From sequence record MT366760.1: DNA of 64,000 nucleotides; one strand, written 5' to 3'. A program made the translations under genes and the position numbers. Position 1 is the first letter of the stretch. Each line of letters opens with the position of its first letter. The notes under the pieces are model-generated. The model was not told where the DNA came from. It made no database searches and saw only the letters and a program-made list of their open reading frames with translations. Shown here one piece after another: positions 43,674 to 50,277 of the stretch.

Positions 43674-45170
43674 ATGACTAAGATTAAATTGTCCAAGTAC
43701 CAGAAGGACGTAAAGAAACATGTGAAAAAGCGCATGTTTAAAAAGAAGAAGCTTAGTAACTTGGTTGTTCAAGCGTGTGCGGGTTCTGGTAAGTCATTTA
43801 CTCTTTGGAATGTCGTTGACGACTTAGTAAGGGCTCACCCGTCCAAAACAATCAAGTTCTTAGCGTTCAACACTGAAATTGCTAAAGAAGGTAACGCTAA
43901 ACTAAAAGAACTAGGTTATGACAATGTAGAGGTCATGACTATCCATAGTTTTGGTTTATCATTGATTCGTGAACTATGGAAAGAGCCACCGTCGATTGAC
44001 CAATCTAAGGTTTGGCGTTATTTAACACACAAGAATCTAGGGAAGAATCTAGGTCACTTTGCATTTACTCTAAATAAGATACGTGATTTAGGTATCACGG
44101 AAACCCGACCTAAGAAACTTAAGAAGTTACTTAAGGATGAGTGGTGTGATTTCCTAAACATTGATTCACCAATGGGTTCTTCAGTATTGAAAAACATAGA
44201 TGTACTTTGTGATATGCTGAATGAACTTGATAGGGATTTCAAACACATTGACTTCAATGATATGTGTAGATACCCGATTATCCATGACCTAGTCAAGCGT
44301 GTTAAACATCTAATACCTGACATACTACTGATAGACGAAGTCCAAGATCTCAACGGTTATCAAATTGGTATGGTTAGTAAGATGTTAGAAGCTAAACCAC
44401 ACATGAGGGTTATGGCGGTTGGTGATGATTGGCAGGCTATATACGGATTCAGGGGTGCTATTGATAGTATGAGTAAAGTTAAATCTTTACTTGACGCAGA
44501 AGAATTACCTTTGTCTACAACGTACCGTACTCGAAGTAAAATTGTTGATTGGATTAAACAACATCTGGGTGGTGCCGACCACTTGGAAGCTGAGAGGGAG
44601 GGTGGTGAGGTTTTCGAAGTCAATGGTCTTGAGTCGGATACTTATGCAGTTAAGTTCATGATGCACCATAAGATTGGTATGGTGGTCAGCCCGAAAAACA
44701 AACACCTTATTCGAATTGCTATCACTCTCATTGATAACGAAGTTGACTTCACTATGAGGAAGTCGGGTGTGTTAGAAGAAGTGCGGTTGCTAATTAAAAA
44801 ACAGGATTCTAAAACAATGACTGGTCTTCGTAAAGGTCTAGGTCTGGAGAAAAAGAATGCTCCGAGTGGTATGAAGGGTAGGGAAATCAAAGACTTAGTG
44901 GAAACTACGCTGTTCTTCTTAAACCACTTTTCATTCGCAACGCCCCTTGATGCCTTGAGTAAAATCACTAGTCTTAAGCGTAGGGATAGGGGTAGGGGTA
45001 TCCAACTACACACGGGGCATTCTTCAAAAGGGTTAGAAGCTCCGGTTGTCGCGGTCATTGAGGACTTCTTCAAAATGGAAGGTGGTCAGAAAAAGAATCT
45101 TAAGTATGTATCTTACACTAGGGCTATCGACAAATTAATTGTTATAGAACCTTATTCAGGAGGAAAGTAA
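43674..45170 (+). CDS. UvrD/Rep-like SF1 helicase
   Basis: ACAGSGKS, IDEVQD, VGDDWQAIYGFRGA, TTYR, HSSKGLE, YVSYTRA. Confidence 0.9.
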   Translation: MTKIKLSKYQKDVKKHVKKRMFKKKKLSNLVVQACAGSGKSFTLWNVVDDLVRAHPSKTIKFLAFNTEIAKEGNAKLKELGYDNVEVMTIHSFGLSLIRELWKEPPSIDQSKVWRYLTHKNLGKNLGHFAFTLNKIRDLGITETRPKKLKKLLKDEWCDFLNIDSPMGSSVLKNIDVLCDMLNELDRDFKHIDFNDMCRYPIIHDLVKRVKHLIPDILLIDEVQDLNGYQIGMVSKMLEAKPHMRVMAVGDDWQAIYGFRGAIDSMSKVKSLLDAEELPLSTTYRTRSKIVDWIKQHLGGADHLEAEREGGEVFEVNGLESDTYAVKFMMHHKIGMVVSPKNKHLIRIAITLIDNEVDFTMRKSGVLEEVRLLIKKQDSKTMTGLRKGLGLEKKNAPSGMKGREIKDLVETTLFFLNHFSFATPLDALSKITSLKRRDRGRGIQLHTGHSSKGLEAPVVAVIEDFFKMEGGQKKNLKYVSYTRAIDKLIVIEPYSGGK

Positions 45171-45675: not shown

Positions 45676-45730
45676 ATCTCTAACCTAATTTAAATTGCAA
45701 TATTGCACAGAACAAAATGAGGACAGAGAT

Positions 45731-46015
45731 ATGCCAATGATGGATGTTCCACAAATGAACAAGAAGCTTAAGGAGCTTAAGAAGATTGCTAAGAACGCTA
45801 CGGGTGTCCGTAAAGATCCGGCAATTAAGAAAGTTAAGTCGATGGAAGCCAAAATCAAGAAGGCTCGTTCGATGAAAGCTAAAGAAGGAGCGAAGGGTCG
45901 CAAGAAGATGGCTAAAGCAGGTGTCAGTTGCGACCGCAAGCGCGTAGAGGCTGCACTCAAGGGTTGGAAGACTCGCCGCAAACTCCACGGAAAATCAGGT
46001 TGTAAAAATAAGTAA
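45731..46015 (+). CDS. small Lys/Ala-rich basic protein (histone H1-like composition)
   Basis: GAGGA RBS before the ATG at 45731; monocistronic between two terminators. Confidence 0.7.
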   Translation: MPMMDVPQMNKKLKELKKIAKNATGVRKDPAIKKVKSMEAKIKKARSMKAKEGAKGRKKMAKAGVSCDRKRVEAALKGWKTRRKLHGKSGCKNK

Positions 46016-46028
46016 CAGATCACAAATT

Positions 46029-46051
46029 ACCGCCTTTCGGGGCGGTTTTTT
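46029..46051 (+). terminator. intrinsic terminator
   Basis: ACCGCC stem, TTCG loop, GGCGGT, T6. Confidence 0.85.
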
Positions 46052-46765
46052 GTTCTCTAAAATCGGAAAATCAAAAATCGTCTAAATAGAGGTTTAGAGC
46101 GTCTAGACCTCAAAAGTTTGATAGCAAAAAACCCTGATAGTGTTGTGCCCGTATAGGGCAAAAATGCCCTCTCAAAATCGCGTTTACAGGTGTCAAATCG
46201 TCCCACAGATGCCTCTACAGAACACCCCGTTCACCCAATTTTTCGCCAAACACCCCAAAATCATCGAGGCACAATTTTTTAGACATGATATATCACTTAT
46301 CAGTGAATATAACCGAAATGTCTTCTATCTATCTACTGATCTCCACCTCTCTGGTCTGACCTCCGACTAAGTCTGGTCTACCTATAAGCATGGAGTAACC
46401 AAATATCATATATCATTAAACTACCCACTTAGACATAGATATAGATACCATATTTATAAATAGGAGGTGGTCTAGACGATTTAGAGATTTGCACAAAATT
46501 GAGTTTTTTAACGTTTTTTAACGTTTTTTATAACCCCAGATATCATCCCTTATTTCCACACTAATTTGATATAATTCAAATATGCTTGATTATGTAAATA
46601 CGTTATGAAGTTAATGGGGACAGGAGCCGCAACTCTTGGGATAACGATAGTGGATTGATGACCCGCGAACACTGGGTAGTTTTTCATAGCTAGCTATTCA
46701 GCACTCAAATCCCTAACCTGTTAACTTCCATCACCTATTCAACATAATTTATTAGGACTTTAGCT
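46052..46765. other. long non-coding region (candidate origin/packaging or regulatory locus)
   Basis: No credible ORF; A/T tracts, palindromes, tandem repeat. Confidence 0.55.
46503..46530 (+). repeat. 10-bp tandem repeat (GTTTTTTAAC x ~2.8)
   Basis: gttttttaac gttttttaac gtttttta. Confidence 0.85.
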
Positions 46766-48622
46766 ATGAAAAGCAAAAAGACAACCAGTAAGGCTTTTAT
46801 CGAAGCTATTGAAAAGCTCACCAAATACCCAGAACACCCAGTCACACTCCTCCACGATGTTGTAACAGCTTACCTAACAGACTTAGGTGTCCCAGAAAAG
46901 AAACTGGCTTTATGTGAGAAACACATGTGCCACCTCTTCGGTCACCATATCGCAAGTCGCCATGATCTTGCTCGGTCTAAAAAAGGCAGCCACAACATCA
47001 ACCCTTGGATTCCACTACCCTACACTTTGCTCAATAGCGAATTCTATTCTTTGTACAAAGAAAAGTTCAAAGATGGTAAATCTATTTGGCAACACCTTAT
47101 GGAATCCAAAGACAACCCACTCTTTGTAATAGACACCTACTACTACCAATCAACTAAAGCTAAGCGCGGCAAATGCCGTAGATACAAATTGAATGAACAG
47201 TTACTGAATTTGTTTTATACTCTATGTGTCAAAACATTTACTGACCTAGAAAAGAAAGAGCCTAAAATGAATTTTTTATCAGGTGCCTATGGGAGGACGT
47301 TTTGTATTGCAACTGGTATTGACATCGCCTCTGAATTGAAACGCTTGCAATTACACGTAAAATCAAAAGTAGGTGCATCCGGTCATCGCGTACTCTACAA
47401 AGATCGCGGACGTAGTATCCGAACATCCGACTACCTTAAGGATAAGACTCGTGTTCAATTCCCTAGGTTGCAAACACAAGCTATCAATAATGCATGTGCT
47501 TCCTTCCCCATCGACATGGTTGAAATATTTGATTACCTAGACGAAGAGGGTGCCAAACTAGTTGATGGTCGTATGCCAGTAGGTGGTAAGGACTACTGCA
47601 AATTCATGAACAACTTCTGGGCTGTTCAAAGGATGTGTGAATGTAAATACATCGCACAATCCCCTCGACGTGTTGAATTTTATCCTAGCTATGACACACG
47701 AGCAACTTTTGGTAGCCGAACGTTCGGCAATCCTACTCAGAACATTTCAAGTAAGTTGAAACAACGTGCAGCAGGTCCGTACCTGAAATCAGAAGATAAT
47801 CCTTATGGTTGGCATATTATCAACTACGACATCGAAAGTTCTCAGATGTATTTTCTTAGCGTTATATTGAAAGCGTATAACATTGATTGCCCTTGGTTAA
47901 CTGACTTCCTTGCTAATAGTAGTAAGAAAGATCTAGCACGTAGTCTAGGTATAAACGTTAAGACTCTTAAAATTATAATGTACGCACTGGTATTCGGAGC
48001 ACCCCTGAACAAAAATTTCAATATAAAGGTGCTAAAACATAAACGACACATCTTAGTAGATGAAATGTATAGTGGTCTAGTTGACCATGGTTACCTACAA
48101 AGTGATGATTTCGAAATAGAGAATGTCCTAGGTGGGGCTATTATAGAAGCTATCTACTCCTGTGTTGGTTCTAAATCCAAAACTAAAGAAGTCTATGAAA
48201 ATGTTTATACCGAGTTCATTGGTCTTTATGAAGCACTAAATGAATTAGACTCCAGACTATACGAAGATTCCTACAAACCAAAACGAACAAAAGGAACGGG
48301 TCGTCATTGGAAAAATTCAGTTGGCTCCATAATATCTGAAGCAGACCTCCGTGGTGATGCACGTAAGCGAAAAGCATCCTTGCGTGCCCACATACTTCAG
48401 GGTATGGAAGCAGCATGGGTTTACTATATCATTAATAAACTATCTGAATTCTACGAGCACGCAGTTGTCTGTGGCATTGAACATGACGGGTTCATCTCAC
48501 GTCGTGTGGTTACACCAGAATGCATAGAATATGCTAATAACGAAGTGAACAAATTAACTTCTCTAACCAGATTGAAAAATGTGCGGGTAAAAGCAAAATT
48601 AATCGAGAAACCTTTTGCATAA
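46766..48622 (+). CDS. family-A DNA polymerase-fold protein without exonuclease domains, N-terminal HTH-like region
   Basis: SRTFGNPTQNIS, YDIESSQ (motif A), KTLKIIMYALVFG (motif B), ILQGMEAA, EHDG (motif C). Confidence 0.55.
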   Translation: MKSKKTTSKAFIEAIEKLTKYPEHPVTLLHDVVTAYLTDLGVPEKKLALCEKHMCHLFGHHIASRHDLARSKKGSHNINPWIPLPYTLLNSEFYSLYKEKFKDGKSIWQHLMESKDNPLFVIDTYYYQSTKAKRGKCRRYKLNEQLLNLFYTLCVKTFTDLEKKEPKMNFLSGAYGRTFCIATGIDIASELKRLQLHVKSKVGASGHRVLYKDRGRSIRTSDYLKDKTRVQFPRLQTQAINNACASFPIDMVEIFDYLDEEGAKLVDGRMPVGGKDYCKFMNNFWAVQRMCECKYIAQSPRRVEFYPSYDTRATFGSRTFGNPTQNISSKLKQRAAGPYLKSEDNPYGWHIINYDIESSQMYFLSVILKAYNIDCPWLTDFLANSSKKDLARSLGINVKTLKIIMYALVFGAPLNKNFNIKVLKHKRHILVDEMYSGLVDHGYLQSDDFEIENVLGGAIIEAIYSCVGSKSKTKEVYENVYTEFIGLYEALNELDSRLYEDSYKPKRTKGTGRHWKNSVGSIISEADLRGDARKRKASLRAHILQGMEAAWVYYIINKLSEFYEHAVVCGIEHDGFISRRVVTPECIEYANNEVNKLTSLTRLKNVRVKAKLIEKPFA

Positions 48623-48820: not shown

Positions 48821-49471
48821 ATGGCGGGTTTCGGTAAGATAAATCCTGACCAAGGTAAGTACCGAGCAAGGTCAGGTAACTTGAATATATTACCACACCT
48901 CGATAGAAAGCTAGTAACTGAGTCACCACTAAAGACTCCCATCATTTTCTACACTGATGGCTCCTGTCTAGCGGACGATGGTTGTGGTGGGTTTAGTATC
49001 ACCCGATGGATTAAACACCCTAAAACAAAAGATACAATCGAAGTAAGTTCCTCGTGGTCATATTCAACAGACACCACTATATCAATCATGGAACTAGGTG
49101 CAGCACTGATAGCACTTAGACAAGTTGAGGGGACACAAAGACCAATCTACATTTACACCGACAGCCAATATGTTCAGAAGGGCGTCGAAGAATACCTAGC
49201 AGGTTGGGTTCGTAGTGGTCGTAGTTCACGTGGGGAAATAAAGAACCTAGGATTATGGCAGGAAATGGTAGACCTAATTAATAGGCACCATGTCGAATTC
49301 AGATGGGTTAAAGGTCACTCCGGTATAAAAGAAAACGACCGTGCTGATTTTTTGGCGGGTAATGGTCGTGCACTAGCTCTTAAGGAATCGGGGCTAGCGC
49401 ACAAAGTAAATGAAGACTACAGAATGATAGAAAATGAAGATGTACCTGGATTCATCTATCATAACTTATAA
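48821..49471 (+). CDS. rnhA: ribonuclease HI
   Basis: FYTDGSC, MELGAAL, IYTDSQYV, KNLGLW, WVKGHSG..ENDRADFLA. Confidence 0.95.
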   Translation: MAGFGKINPDQGKYRARSGNLNILPHLDRKLVTESPLKTPIIFYTDGSCLADDGCGGFSITRWIKHPKTKDTIEVSSSWSYSTDTTISIMELGAALIALRQVEGTQRPIYIYTDSQYVQKGVEEYLAGWVRSGRSSRGEIKNLGLWQEMVDLINRHHVEFRWVKGHSGIKENDRADFLAGNGRALALKESGLAHKVNEDYRMIENEDVPGFIYHNL

Positions 49472-49495
49472 ATAATAGGGGACTTTAGTAGTCCC

Positions 49496-49560
49496 TATTG
49501 GGAAGGGCACTCACCTCAGGTGTTACTGAGTTCAAAAGCGACCGAGTGTCTTTCCCAATA
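49496..49560 (+). ncRNA. candidate structured RNA: 17 bp stem with an inner hairpin, ending 1 nt before the tRNA-like gene
   Basis: TATTGGGAAGGGCACTC/GAGTGTCTTTCCCAATA (2 G-U pairs); CTCAG/CTGAG. Confidence 0.45.
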
Positions 49561-49561
49561 T

Positions 49562-49646
49562 GGTGTGGTAGTTCAACTGGATAGAACAGCAGGGTGCACC
49601 GTTAACAGACTGCCAGTTATTGGTTCAAAGCCAATCCACACCACCA
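49562..49646 (+). tRNA. tRNA-like gene (85 nt) with an 8-nt-expanded anticodon loop; identity uncertain
   Basis: Acceptor GGTGTGG/CCACACC + A + CCA; D arm GTTC/GAAC; T arm ATTGG-TTCAAAG-CCAAT; anticodon stem GCAG/CTGC. Confidence 0.8.
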
Positions 49647-49648
49647 TA

Positions 49649-49924
49649 TGCGACCTGCAACAGATTAAGTCGCAGACCGTTCCACTCAATATCTGTTGCA
49701 TTAAATCCAACGTACGCCAATACGTTGGTCAGGTCATGCCTCTGATGTCCTGGTAGTTATGTGGCTTACAGAAAACTCGTCCTATCGTCTAAAACTTAAG
49801 ACAGGGTTGGTGGCACGCCTCCCTAAACCCCGTGCCGTCATGAGAACCAACCTGAATATGGGTGCTTACCCGAATTCCCATCGGGGCGTGCGTCAACCGC
49901 AAATACAAGACTGTAAGTTTGGGG
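49649..49924 (+). ncRNA. candidate pseudoknotted structured RNA
   Basis: Multiple 6-10 bp stems, including an H-type pseudoknot at 49649-49700. Confidence 0.4.
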
Positions 49925-50056
49925 TACTACGAAAAACAGATGCATAGATACTGTGCATACCTTTACGCTGACAACGGTATGATTACTGTACCTTTACTAG
50001 ATAACTTTAAATATTATGTGGTGAATGAGAACGGCACCACGTTTGCTAAACTTTAA
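49862..50056 (+). CDS. possible small hypothetical protein (64 aa)
   Basis: Protein-like composition, ends just before the terminator; weak RBS and overlaps the predicted RNA stems. Confidence 0.35.
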   Translation: MLTRIPIGACVNRKYKTVSLGYYEKQMHRYCAYLYADNGMITVPLLDNFKYYVVNENGTTFAKL

Positions 50057-50062
50057 AGAAAT

Positions 50063-50095
50063 AAAAAGCGCAAACCCAAACGGGCTGCGCTTTTT
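50063..50095. terminator. bidirectional intrinsic terminator
   Basis: AAAAAGCGCA-AACCCAAACGGGC-TGCGCTTTTT. Confidence 0.85.
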
Positions 50096-50277
50096 AGTCC
50101 CTAATTACAGTGTTCCAAATATTCGTGCGAACTCCTGCATATTAACACCTGCTTGCTTCAGCTCTTCATCAAGCCGTGTAGCATTCGCTTGCTCAATACT
50201 TCTTCTCTCATCCGAAGCAGTTGCCGCTCTCTTTAATTTTCTACGGGCAATAGCAGCCGTATTAACTGTTCTTATAC

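Follow-up and report, generated by a model that had tools for sequence, protein, structure and literature searches.

The stretch of DNA analyzed here (the window, 64,000 nucleotides) belongs to record MT366760.1, the 207,758-bp genome of Vibrio phage vB_VcorM_GR7B (hereafter GR7B), whose host is Vibrio coralliilyticus; record positions are obtained by adding 62,000 to the window positions used throughout. GR7B_00126, an open reading frame (ORF) at 46766-48622 on the plus strand, is 100% identical to MT366760.1 by tblastn and was deposited as a 'hypothetical protein' of 618 amino acids. It lies in a block of replication and nucleotide-metabolism genes. A QueC/deazaguanine cluster and a ligase are encoded leftward; the genes that then run rightward are DHFR, a UvrD/Rep-type helicase, two small ORFs, an ORF-free tract, GR7B_00126, RNase HI and a tRNA-like gene. 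The only close relative of GR7B_00126 is GR11A_00066 of a sister phage (68% identity). We identify it as a genuine member of the Transposon-Virus polymerase (TV-Pol) family, a family known computationally since its description by Iyer, Abhiman and Aravind in 2008 (PMC2579912), and the membership of the GR7B gene is newly assigned.

Searches of Pfam, NCBIfam, PADLOC and the sequences of the Protein Data Bank (PDB), made with GR7B_00126 and with its family profile, returned no match, and in PHROGs the protein matches only phrog_30690, a group of unknown function. An AlphaFold2 (AF2) model built on the family alignment has a predicted local distance difference test score (pLDDT) of 78 and a predicted template modeling score of 0.81. 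All 82 Foldseek matches to the PDB at E ≤ 1e-3 are family-A DNA polymerases. With VIA, an independent all-against-all structure aligner, the model superimposes on the Klenow fragment of E. coli Pol I with a Z score of 18.1 (306 residues, root-mean-square deviation 3.9), on Pol theta with 17.9, on apicoplast Pol with 15.3, on Pol nu with 15.1 and on T7 DNA polymerase (DNAP) with 14.3; among RNA polymerases (RNAPs), the mitochondrial and T7 enzymes score 11.2 and the N4 virion RNAP 9.5. These fold matches span residues ~195-618. The Foldseek check suggested in a preliminary description of this DNA thus puts the polymerase part of the protein among the family-A polymerases. The absence of 3'-5' and 5'-3' exonuclease domains, noted in the same description, also holds, for Pfam is blank, the fold match begins only at residue ~195 and the N-terminus consists of helices and a winged-helix-like unit.

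Comparison of the family profile with the Klenow polymerase domain by hhalign gave a probability of 17% (P 1.4e-3), weak statistics obtained with a single-sequence template, and an alignment that is collinear across 218 columns. With Klenow numbering checked against the real E. coli polA, G-R of the hairpin pairs with TGR668, Q325 with Q677, Q545 with Q849 and H573-D574 with H881-D882, while in motif B K402, Y406, F410 and G411 pair with K758, F762, Y766 and G767. At motif A, hhalign matched 'SQ' to the 'SQ' of Klenow D-Y-S-Q; the equivalence of D355 and Klenow D705 is instead read from the strand-then-helix geometry of the model. The Pfam model DNA_pol_A (PF00476) finds no match above threshold in GR7B_00126 or its 89 aligned relatives, although it recognizes the phage's real PolA at 1.7e-42, and similarity between the GR7B_00126 profile and that PolA is negligible (hhalign probability 11%).

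Column statistics were taken from an alignment of 89 family members with the GR7B protein as its first row. Six columns (N353, D355, K402, E548, D574 and G575) are 100% conserved, and at least 90% of the relatives share Q325, K332, Q360, G411, N517, Q545, H573 and K615. The five PolA-like motifs named in the preliminary description prove to be true PolA motifs without exception, and they fall on invariant or near-invariant columns of this alignment, far beyond what chance would give. From sequence and model, D355 in motif A and D574 in motif C are the predicted pair of catalytic aspartates. Motif B, which was also aligned to K-T-F-I-Y-G-F-L-Y-G-A of T7 DNAP, has the T7-DNAP-type pattern K-x-x-x-Y-x-x-x-F-G-A, and the catalytic core as a whole looks DNAP-like rather than RNAP-like; the hhalign alignment with T7 RNAP covers motif C only, and the family columns show Phe or Met at the position of Tyr639. 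The ranking Pol I, T7 DNAP, T7 RNAP is the same for structure (Z 18.1, 14.3 and 11.2) and for profile score (32.9, 25.5 and 20.6). Together with the type of motif B it favors a DNA polymerase, and the T7-type RNAP that the preliminary description had brought in through the shared fold becomes less likely.

Several active-site positions depart from those of known polymerases. In 84 of the 89 relatives the Q360 column holds Gln where Klenow has the steric-gate residue E710, and motif C has Gly throughout the family where Klenow has E883. GR7B has V398 four residues before K402, a position at which Arg occurs in only 6 of the 89 relatives and is missing from Microcystis phage Ma-LMM01 too, and Lys399 replaces an Asp of the fingers found in 54 of 89. 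The hairpin Arg is present in 87 of the 89; GR7B and GR11A have Gly in its place and an Arg, R318, two residues further along that strand (G-S-R). Only these two proteins carry a 9-residue insert ahead of motif A. The near-invariant K615 lies close to where the conserved core ends, three residues before that point. As a side observation, this Lys of 'E-K-P-F' (88/89) is often at the very C-terminus of the protein and brings to mind the 'foot' at the C-terminus of T7 RNAP, which reaches the active site.

An exhaustive profile search with GR7B_00126 brought up 207 relatives (E ≤ 1e-3), most of them 450-600 amino acids long, and no Pfam domain was detected in any of the 89 that were aligned. The 89-member profile matches exactly one ORF of phage Ma-LMM01, ORF30 (E 1.9e-36), which adjoins two transposase genes; from the authors' description we infer that ORF30 is the TV-Pol element of PMC2579912. 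Phage-type integrases lie beside relatives in at least six loci, and in at least six cyanobacterial loci a gene with Rha/AntA and KilA-C domains is directly upstream, a KilA-C neighbor being what was reported for the Brucella TV-Pol (PMC2579912). Structural neighbors in the ESM Atlas and BFVD comprise unnamed phage and bacterial clusters, canonical PolAs, and virophage and polinton-like virus proteins with a D5-type helicase fusion, among them virophage V13-type replication proteins; fusion of a similar domain to a D5-type helicase is the architecture that defined TV-Pols (PMC2579912). We hold the assignment of fold and family with high confidence. Motifs diagnostic of the family are G-R...G-G-x-Q-S, N-Y-D-L-K-S-S-Q, W-K-x-C-L-Y-A-L-x-M-G-A, L-Q-G-x-E-A, N-E-H-D-G and E-K-P-F.

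Some relatives are of interest in their own right. Klebsiella spallanzanii (locus L060) and Gilliamella apicola (L061) have enterobacterial relatives of the Erwinia-phage TV-Pol, with genes for GmrSD (a type IV restriction enzyme), a regulator of the HTH-ImmA/IrrE type and an ABC-3C conflict system (CTD6, MC2) as neighbors; these neighborhoods are defense and insertion hot-spots. On a 190-kb provirus contig (L017:7932-9431) the TV-Pol frame is split into adjacent ORFs of 246 and 250 amino acids, a frameshifted or decaying copy. A 938-residue member (L025:6711-9524) carries a low-complexity N-terminal extension of ~430 residues, rich in Pro, Arg and Glu and without a Pfam match.

The N-terminal domain of GR7B_00126 is net basic. 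The preliminary description had called its 'GKCRRYKL' segment winged-helix-like, and conservation and topology are in keeping with this: the strand is kept family-wide as C/S-R-E/R-Y/F-K/R-V/L, the pattern 'W-x-P-x-P...E-F-G-R...L-x-x-x-G-L-I-E-V' precedes it, and two AF2 models show the order H1-b1-H2-H3-b2-wing-b3. Structural matches are weak, though consistently of the MarR/PadR/ORC type. Folded alone, the domain gives a moderate model (pLDDT 64) whose top Foldseek rows are MarR, PadR and ORC at non-significant values (E ≥ 0.27) and whose maximum VIA Z is 4.8, and the ESM Atlas model has HTH_20, HTH_27, TFIIE-alpha, PadR and ORC/CDC6 as named neighbors, with template modeling (TM) scores of 0.35-0.45. 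A winged helix is plausible from the models. The domain is followed by an insert of ~35 residues (161-200) that is 75% identical between GR7B and GR11A, conserved as much as the catalytic palm, and may be a motif on which a partner protein from phage or host docks.

Other parts of the GR7B genome supply a canonical PolA (E 1.7e-42), a helicase of the DnaB type and a Toprim (DnaG-type) primase, so the TV-Pol is an addition to a complete replisome; no archaeo-eukaryotic primase (AEP) was found in the genome. A Toprim primase is also present in four of the five other viral TV-Pol carriers, and the coexistence of TV-Pols with a normal replisome was noted by Iyer et al. (PMC2579912). With these three proteins at hand, the idea that the phage needs the TV-Pol as its primase is not borne out. 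In two phages from IMG/VR (L020 and L022) the TV-Pol gene heads a DnaB-PolA-Toprim module. The order there is TV-Pol, ORFs of 96, 314 and 181 amino acids, DnaB, PolA, an ORF of 155 amino acids and Toprim, and the canonical PolA of L020 (12747-15794) and its L022 equivalent contain an apparent intein (Intein_splicing, 1.6e-5) between the exonuclease and polymerase domains.

The gene does lie between a non-coding tract and RNase H, as the preliminary description stressed, but the second of these neighbors is a matter of inherited backbone synteny. Among ~40 loci, a TV-Pol gene adjoins RNase H only in GR7B and GR11A, and in Pseudomonas phage Peetri, a distant relative, the backbone is the same (QueC cluster, helicase ... 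RNase H) with no TV-Pol in between; RNase H is therefore a backbone gene and not a partner. No integrase, transposase or KilA-C gene flanks GR7B_00126.

At 742 bp, against 553 and 499 bp, the tract is the largest ORF-free gap in the 208-kb genome. The main divergent strand switch is 3 kb away. The tract has neither a conserved ORF nor an Rfam match, and contains an AT-rich block with phased T6 tracts (Table 1). A replication origin there is conceivable yet unsupported. The last ORF before it (45695-46015) specifies a very Lys-rich protein of ~100 amino acids with internal K-rich repeats; it is annotated as GR7B_00125 with a later start, and it has no family match and no recognized counterpart in the other loci. 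On the far side of RNase HI, ARAGORN reports a tRNA at 49562-49646 to which it assigns no identity and whose anticodon loop is unusual, and the syntenic site in GR11A has an annotated tRNA-Cys (L002:11223-11306). The surrounding segment, 49472-50277, is the second-largest ORF-poor stretch. Expression evidence was sought in sequencing runs; those that contain the sequence are all DNA runs from the source study, and none is an RNA run.

Table 1. Features of the GR7B TV-Pol locus, in window coordinates (residue numbers refer to GR7B_00126; fractions give relatives that share the residue).
Feature	Position	Strand	Basis
UvrD/Rep-type helicase, opens the rightward replication block	43674..45170	+	PF00580 3.1e-23, phrog_1967; used as synteny anchor
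Non-coding tract, 750 bp	46016..46765	.	Sequence; no conserved ORF
Terminator of preceding gene	46029-46055	in tract	Terminator scan
AT-rich block, 200 bp, 66-80% AT	46416-46615	in tract	AT profile
Three T6 tracts, 10-bp phasing	46503-46532	in tract	Sequence
TV-Pol family gene, minimal family-A-fold polymerase (618 amino acids; GR7B_00126)	46766..48622	+	ORF, AF2 model, Foldseek/VIA, family profile
N-terminal domain (1-160), three helices and winged-helix-like unit, 'CRRYKL' at 137-142	46766..47245	+	Family conservation, topology
GR7B/GR11A-specific insert (161-200)	47246..47365	+	Absent from other members; pLDDT 33-48
Thumb, two antiparallel helices (251-266, 275-292)	47465..47665	+	DSSP of predicted model; within region aligned to PolA thumb/palm
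Beta-hairpin and 'G-S-R...P-T-Q-N-I' (314-332), equivalent to Klenow TGR668...LQ677NIP	47705..47761	+	Columns, locus comparison, hhalign
Motif A, I-N-Y-D355-I-E-S-S-Q360 (352-360)	47819..47845	+	Strand 352-356, then helix; Q360 84/89
Motif B/O-helix, V-K-T-L-K402-I-I-M-Y406-A-L-V-F410-G411-A (398-412)	47957..48001	+	K402 100%, G411 84/89; hhalign
'L-Q545-G-M-E548-A-A' (541-551), equivalent to Klenow Q849-G-T-A-A-D	48386..48418	+	Q545 85/89, E548 100%; hhalign
Motif C, I-E-H573-D574-G575-F (571-576)	48476..48493	+	D574 and G575 100%, H573 81/89; hhalign with Klenow and T7 RNAP
C-terminal 'L-I-E-K615-P-F' signature with near-invariant Lys	48599..48619	+	K615 88/89; also in Peetri_00163
RNase HI	48821..49471	+	PF00075 1.9e-30; backbone gene, not family-wide partner

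Between GR7B and GR11A the proportion of nonsynonymous differences in the gene (pN) is 0.22 against a saturated synonymous value (pS) of 0.81, and GR7B_00126 is therefore under purifying selection. In a 108-row tree the GR7B and GR11A proteins stand alone on a long stem, whereas copies from Erwinia jumbo phages cluster with Klebsiella and Gilliamella sequences; jumbo phages have therefore not inherited TV-Pol from a single phage ancestor. A family-wide link to 7-deazaguanine (QueC) DNA modification was considered and dropped, as QueC is confined to the four phages of ~200-266 kb.

On the strand of RNase H and 5 kb downstream of it, Pseudomonas phage vB_PpuM-Peetri encodes a 1010-residue 'hypothetical' protein without a Pfam match, Peetri_00163 (L030:432-3461 (-), corresponding to PP496444.1 143928-146960). 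Behind an N-terminal extension of ~450 residues, its C-terminal part resembles a very divergent TV-Pol core (hhalign probability 75%) with N-A-x-G, L-C-G-M-E-Q-A, E-H-D-G and a C-terminal R-K-D-F, and it may represent an even more divergent TV-Pol branch in ~200-kb phages. A simple insertion of tract and gene into the backbone was also considered; in Peetri no such gene separates helicase and RNase H, yet this TV-Pol-like protein is encoded 5 kb on, which weakens the idea.

We favor, with about even confidence, the reading that GR7B_00126 is an accessory primase-polymerase acting on DNA. The protein would be a minimal thumb-palm-fingers nucleotidyl transferase whose basic N-terminal domain, conserved in the family, is probably a DNA-binding module of the winged-helix type. 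D355 and D574 would hold two metal ions, K402, Y406 and G411 of the O-helix would bind the incoming nucleotide, and R318, Q325 and Q545 would hold the primer-template. With both aspartates and most other active-site residues kept, catalytic competence is predicted from sequence and model; polymerase activity, a preference for dNTPs, de novo initiation and any tie to the non-coding tract are inferred. The enzyme would then serve beside PolA, DnaB and the Toprim primase as an accessory, non-proofreading, template-dependent DNA polymerase: its N-terminal domain would bind a particular site or structure on the DNA, the polymerase core would start and briefly extend a DNA chain, and the replicative PolA would take that chain over. 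A precedent for such priming is staphylococcal CCPol-MP, a dNTP-using primase (Bebel et al. 2020, PMC7581432) and the sole biochemical precedent for de novo priming by a PolA fold. The non-canonical single-subunit polymerase or primer-synthesizing enzyme proposed in the preliminary description thus survives as a minimal, exonuclease-less PolA fold with a conserved active site; a primase role is not needed in a phage with a Toprim primase. A more specific version, which we consider unlikely, has the winged helix dock the Pol I-fold core on the AT-rich, T-tract-bent DNA upstream and start a DNA (or RNA) chain there de novo. If true, this site-specific initiator would be mechanistically new, a primase-polymerase dedicated to the origin and unlike the primases of the DnaG and AEP types, and the Toprim primase would serve the lagging strand only.

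A number of observations weigh against an accessory primase-polymerase, and against its tie to the tract in particular. To our knowledge, no core TV-Pol family enzyme has been assayed to date. Within the active site, the near-invariant hairpin Arg is shifted in GR7B and GR11A, and V398 stands where the O-helix would have the Arg of its RxxxK motif; moreover, with Gln for the steric-gate Glu and H-D-G rather than H-D-E in motif C, sugar selectivity cannot be read from the sequence. The winged-helix assignment is statistically weak, and the conventional Toprim primase means that priming by the TV-Pol is not required. As for the tract, blastn found no significant similarity to the 1086-bp tract of GR11A, and the apparent 67% identity in a MAFFT alignment of the two is not significant. 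Its repeats are short two-copy matches with no iterons beyond chance, GC skew shows no inflection at the tract, and a long upstream gap is no family trait, gaps of at least 400 bp making up 5% of those upstream of TV-Pol genes and 7% of other gaps. CCPol, the priming precedent, is much nearer to canonical PolAs than GR7B_00126 is and needs an OB-fold partner, MP, no counterpart of which recurs near TV-Pol genes: among the ~40 loci there is no recurrent small partner like MP or a single-stranded-DNA-binding protein, and the neighbors, whose folds were not predicted, are without Pfam or PHROG assignment.

An accessory DNA polymerase that only extends primers, in repair, gap filling, lesion bypass, end joining or recombination-dependent replication, with neither priming nor a link to an origin, is a possible but less probable explanation. 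The exonuclease-less Pol theta (Z 17.9) and Pol nu (Z 15.1) are among the top structural matches, a proofreading domain is absent, the phage already has its Toprim primase, and repair roles have been proposed in a 2024 preprint for other divergent second PolAs (10.1101/2024.04.26.591309). Small integrative elements (L006, L031), however, have TV-Pol as their sole replication-type enzyme, which argues for self-sufficient initiation, and a conserved N-terminal domain resembling a DNA-binding module is atypical of repair PolAs. The setting of the relatives could also be taken to mean that the polymerase, possibly with the upstream tract, is former mobile-element cargo concerned with its own maintenance or spread, or only loosely co-opted, and not a replisome component. 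We think this unlikely. Relatives typically reside in elements bearing integrases or transposases and in defense or insertion hot-spots, the GR7B/GR11A branch is long, isolated and unrelated to the Erwinia phage copies, and Peetri has no TV-Pol between helicase and RNase H; on the other hand, the GR7B gene is without integrase, transposase or KilA-C neighbors and has been kept in synteny and under purifying selection by two phages whose proteins are only 68% identical, and the divergent TV-Pol-like protein near the Peetri RNase H hints at long residence in this group of phages.

A single-subunit RNAP that transcribes a set of genes, or lays down an RNA primer or R-loop at the tract for processing by RNase H, is still less probable. 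T7, mitochondrial and N4 RNAPs do share the fold (Z 9.5-11.2), motif C reads H-D-G without the third carboxylate (compare H-D-S in T7 RNAP), the steric-gate Glu is absent (Q360) and RNase HI lies downstream. Against this, the match to DNAPs is clearly the better one by structure as well as by profile, motif B is of the DNAP kind (its F762 position is Tyr, and the Tyr639 that RNAPs need is replaced by Phe or Met), the adjacency to RNase H is backbone synteny, and tiny integrative elements would have no use for an RNAP; a T7-type RNAP signal is also lacking in Pfam, but there the control was likewise silent. It is very improbable that GR7B_00126 is a catalytically inactive polymerase-fold protein that binds DNA or acts as a scaffold. 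The displaced hairpin Arg, the missing O-helix Arg and the lineage-specific inserts could be read in this way; yet the metal-binding Asp pair, the Lys, Tyr and Gly of the O-helix, the Q-G motif and the His-Asp of motif C are all retained, and the hairpin still has an Arg (R318).

The TV-Pol family is absent from the Pfam, NCBIfam and PHROG annotations, and its genes are consequently deposited as 'hypothetical'; a family name and a diagnostic motif set are now available for annotating them. GR7B is a cultivable lytic phage with a tractable Vibrio host, and its gene is under selection inside a replication block. It thus offers a practical system for the role of a second, proofreading-free Pol I-fold enzyme beside a full replisome and for the starting of chains by this fold.

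Like GR7B_00126, CCPol-MP of the staphylococcal SCCmec elements, which is also treated by Rice 2023 (PMC10061031), is an exonuclease-less PolA-fold enzyme that accompanies and does not replace the main replicase. Iyer et al. counted CCPol, an exonuclease-truncated PolA, among the TV-Pols (PMC2579912), whereas Czernecki et al. placed it beside canonical CHEAP PolAs with exonuclease-domain remnants (PMC10201439). CCPol keeps three exonuclease helices and the equivalents of E710 and F762, and its required OB-fold partner is encoded alongside. GR7B_00126, in contrast, has no Pfam DNA_pol_A match, Gln and Tyr at the E710 and F762 positions, a winged-helix-like N-terminal domain and no recurrent small partner, and the exonuclease remnant on which the CCPol partner docks was not found in its model. 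The divergent second phage PolAs divPolA1 and divPolA2 (10.1101/2024.04.26.591309) are equally obscure in function, but GR7B_00126 is not one of them: the family profile finds nothing in a divPolA1 or divPolA2 phage, and hhalign with a divPolA2 representative gives a probability of 1.4%.

With the canonical PolAs (E. coli Pol I Klenow, T7 gp5, Pol theta) GR7B_00126 shares the fold and the order and chemistry of the motifs. It differs from them in having no exonuclease domains, in a shorter N-terminal part of the O-helix without R754, in Gln for E710 and Gly for E883, and in hhalign probabilities of only 11-17% against single PolA sequences. With the single-subunit RNAPs (T7, N4, mitochondrial) it has in common the superfamily fold, an N-terminal domain fused to the core, which in GR7B_00126 probably binds nucleic acid, and the missing third carboxylate of motif C, but it lacks the RNAP motif A (D-G-S-x-S-G-x-Q-H) and a Tyr639 equivalent and is 618 rather than 883-1100 residues long.

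The agreement is closest with the TV-Pols, predicted in 2008 to be primase-polymerases resembling the ancestral state of the Pol I/T7 RNAP superfamily (PMC2579912). In contrast to that description, the N-terminal domain of GR7B_00126 looks winged-helix-like and not purely helical, and the GR7B/GR11A proteins form a long isolated branch with a hairpin Arg shifted by two residues, inserts of 9 and ~35 residues and no mobile-element genes alongside. The Arg of the RxxxK motif in the TV-Pol description is absent from GR7B, and equally from Ma-LMM01 and most relatives, so that this feature does not discriminate. In common with the TV-Pols, GR7B_00126 has the superfamily-A core with a two-helix thumb, a hairpin (whose Arg is displaced here), an RNA-recognition-motif (RRM) palm with two Asp and helical fingers with a conserved Lys; it has no nuclease domain, carries a further globular domain at the N-terminus, occurs alongside a normal replisome, and belongs to a family found in phages and integrative elements beside integrases, transposases and KilA-C proteins.

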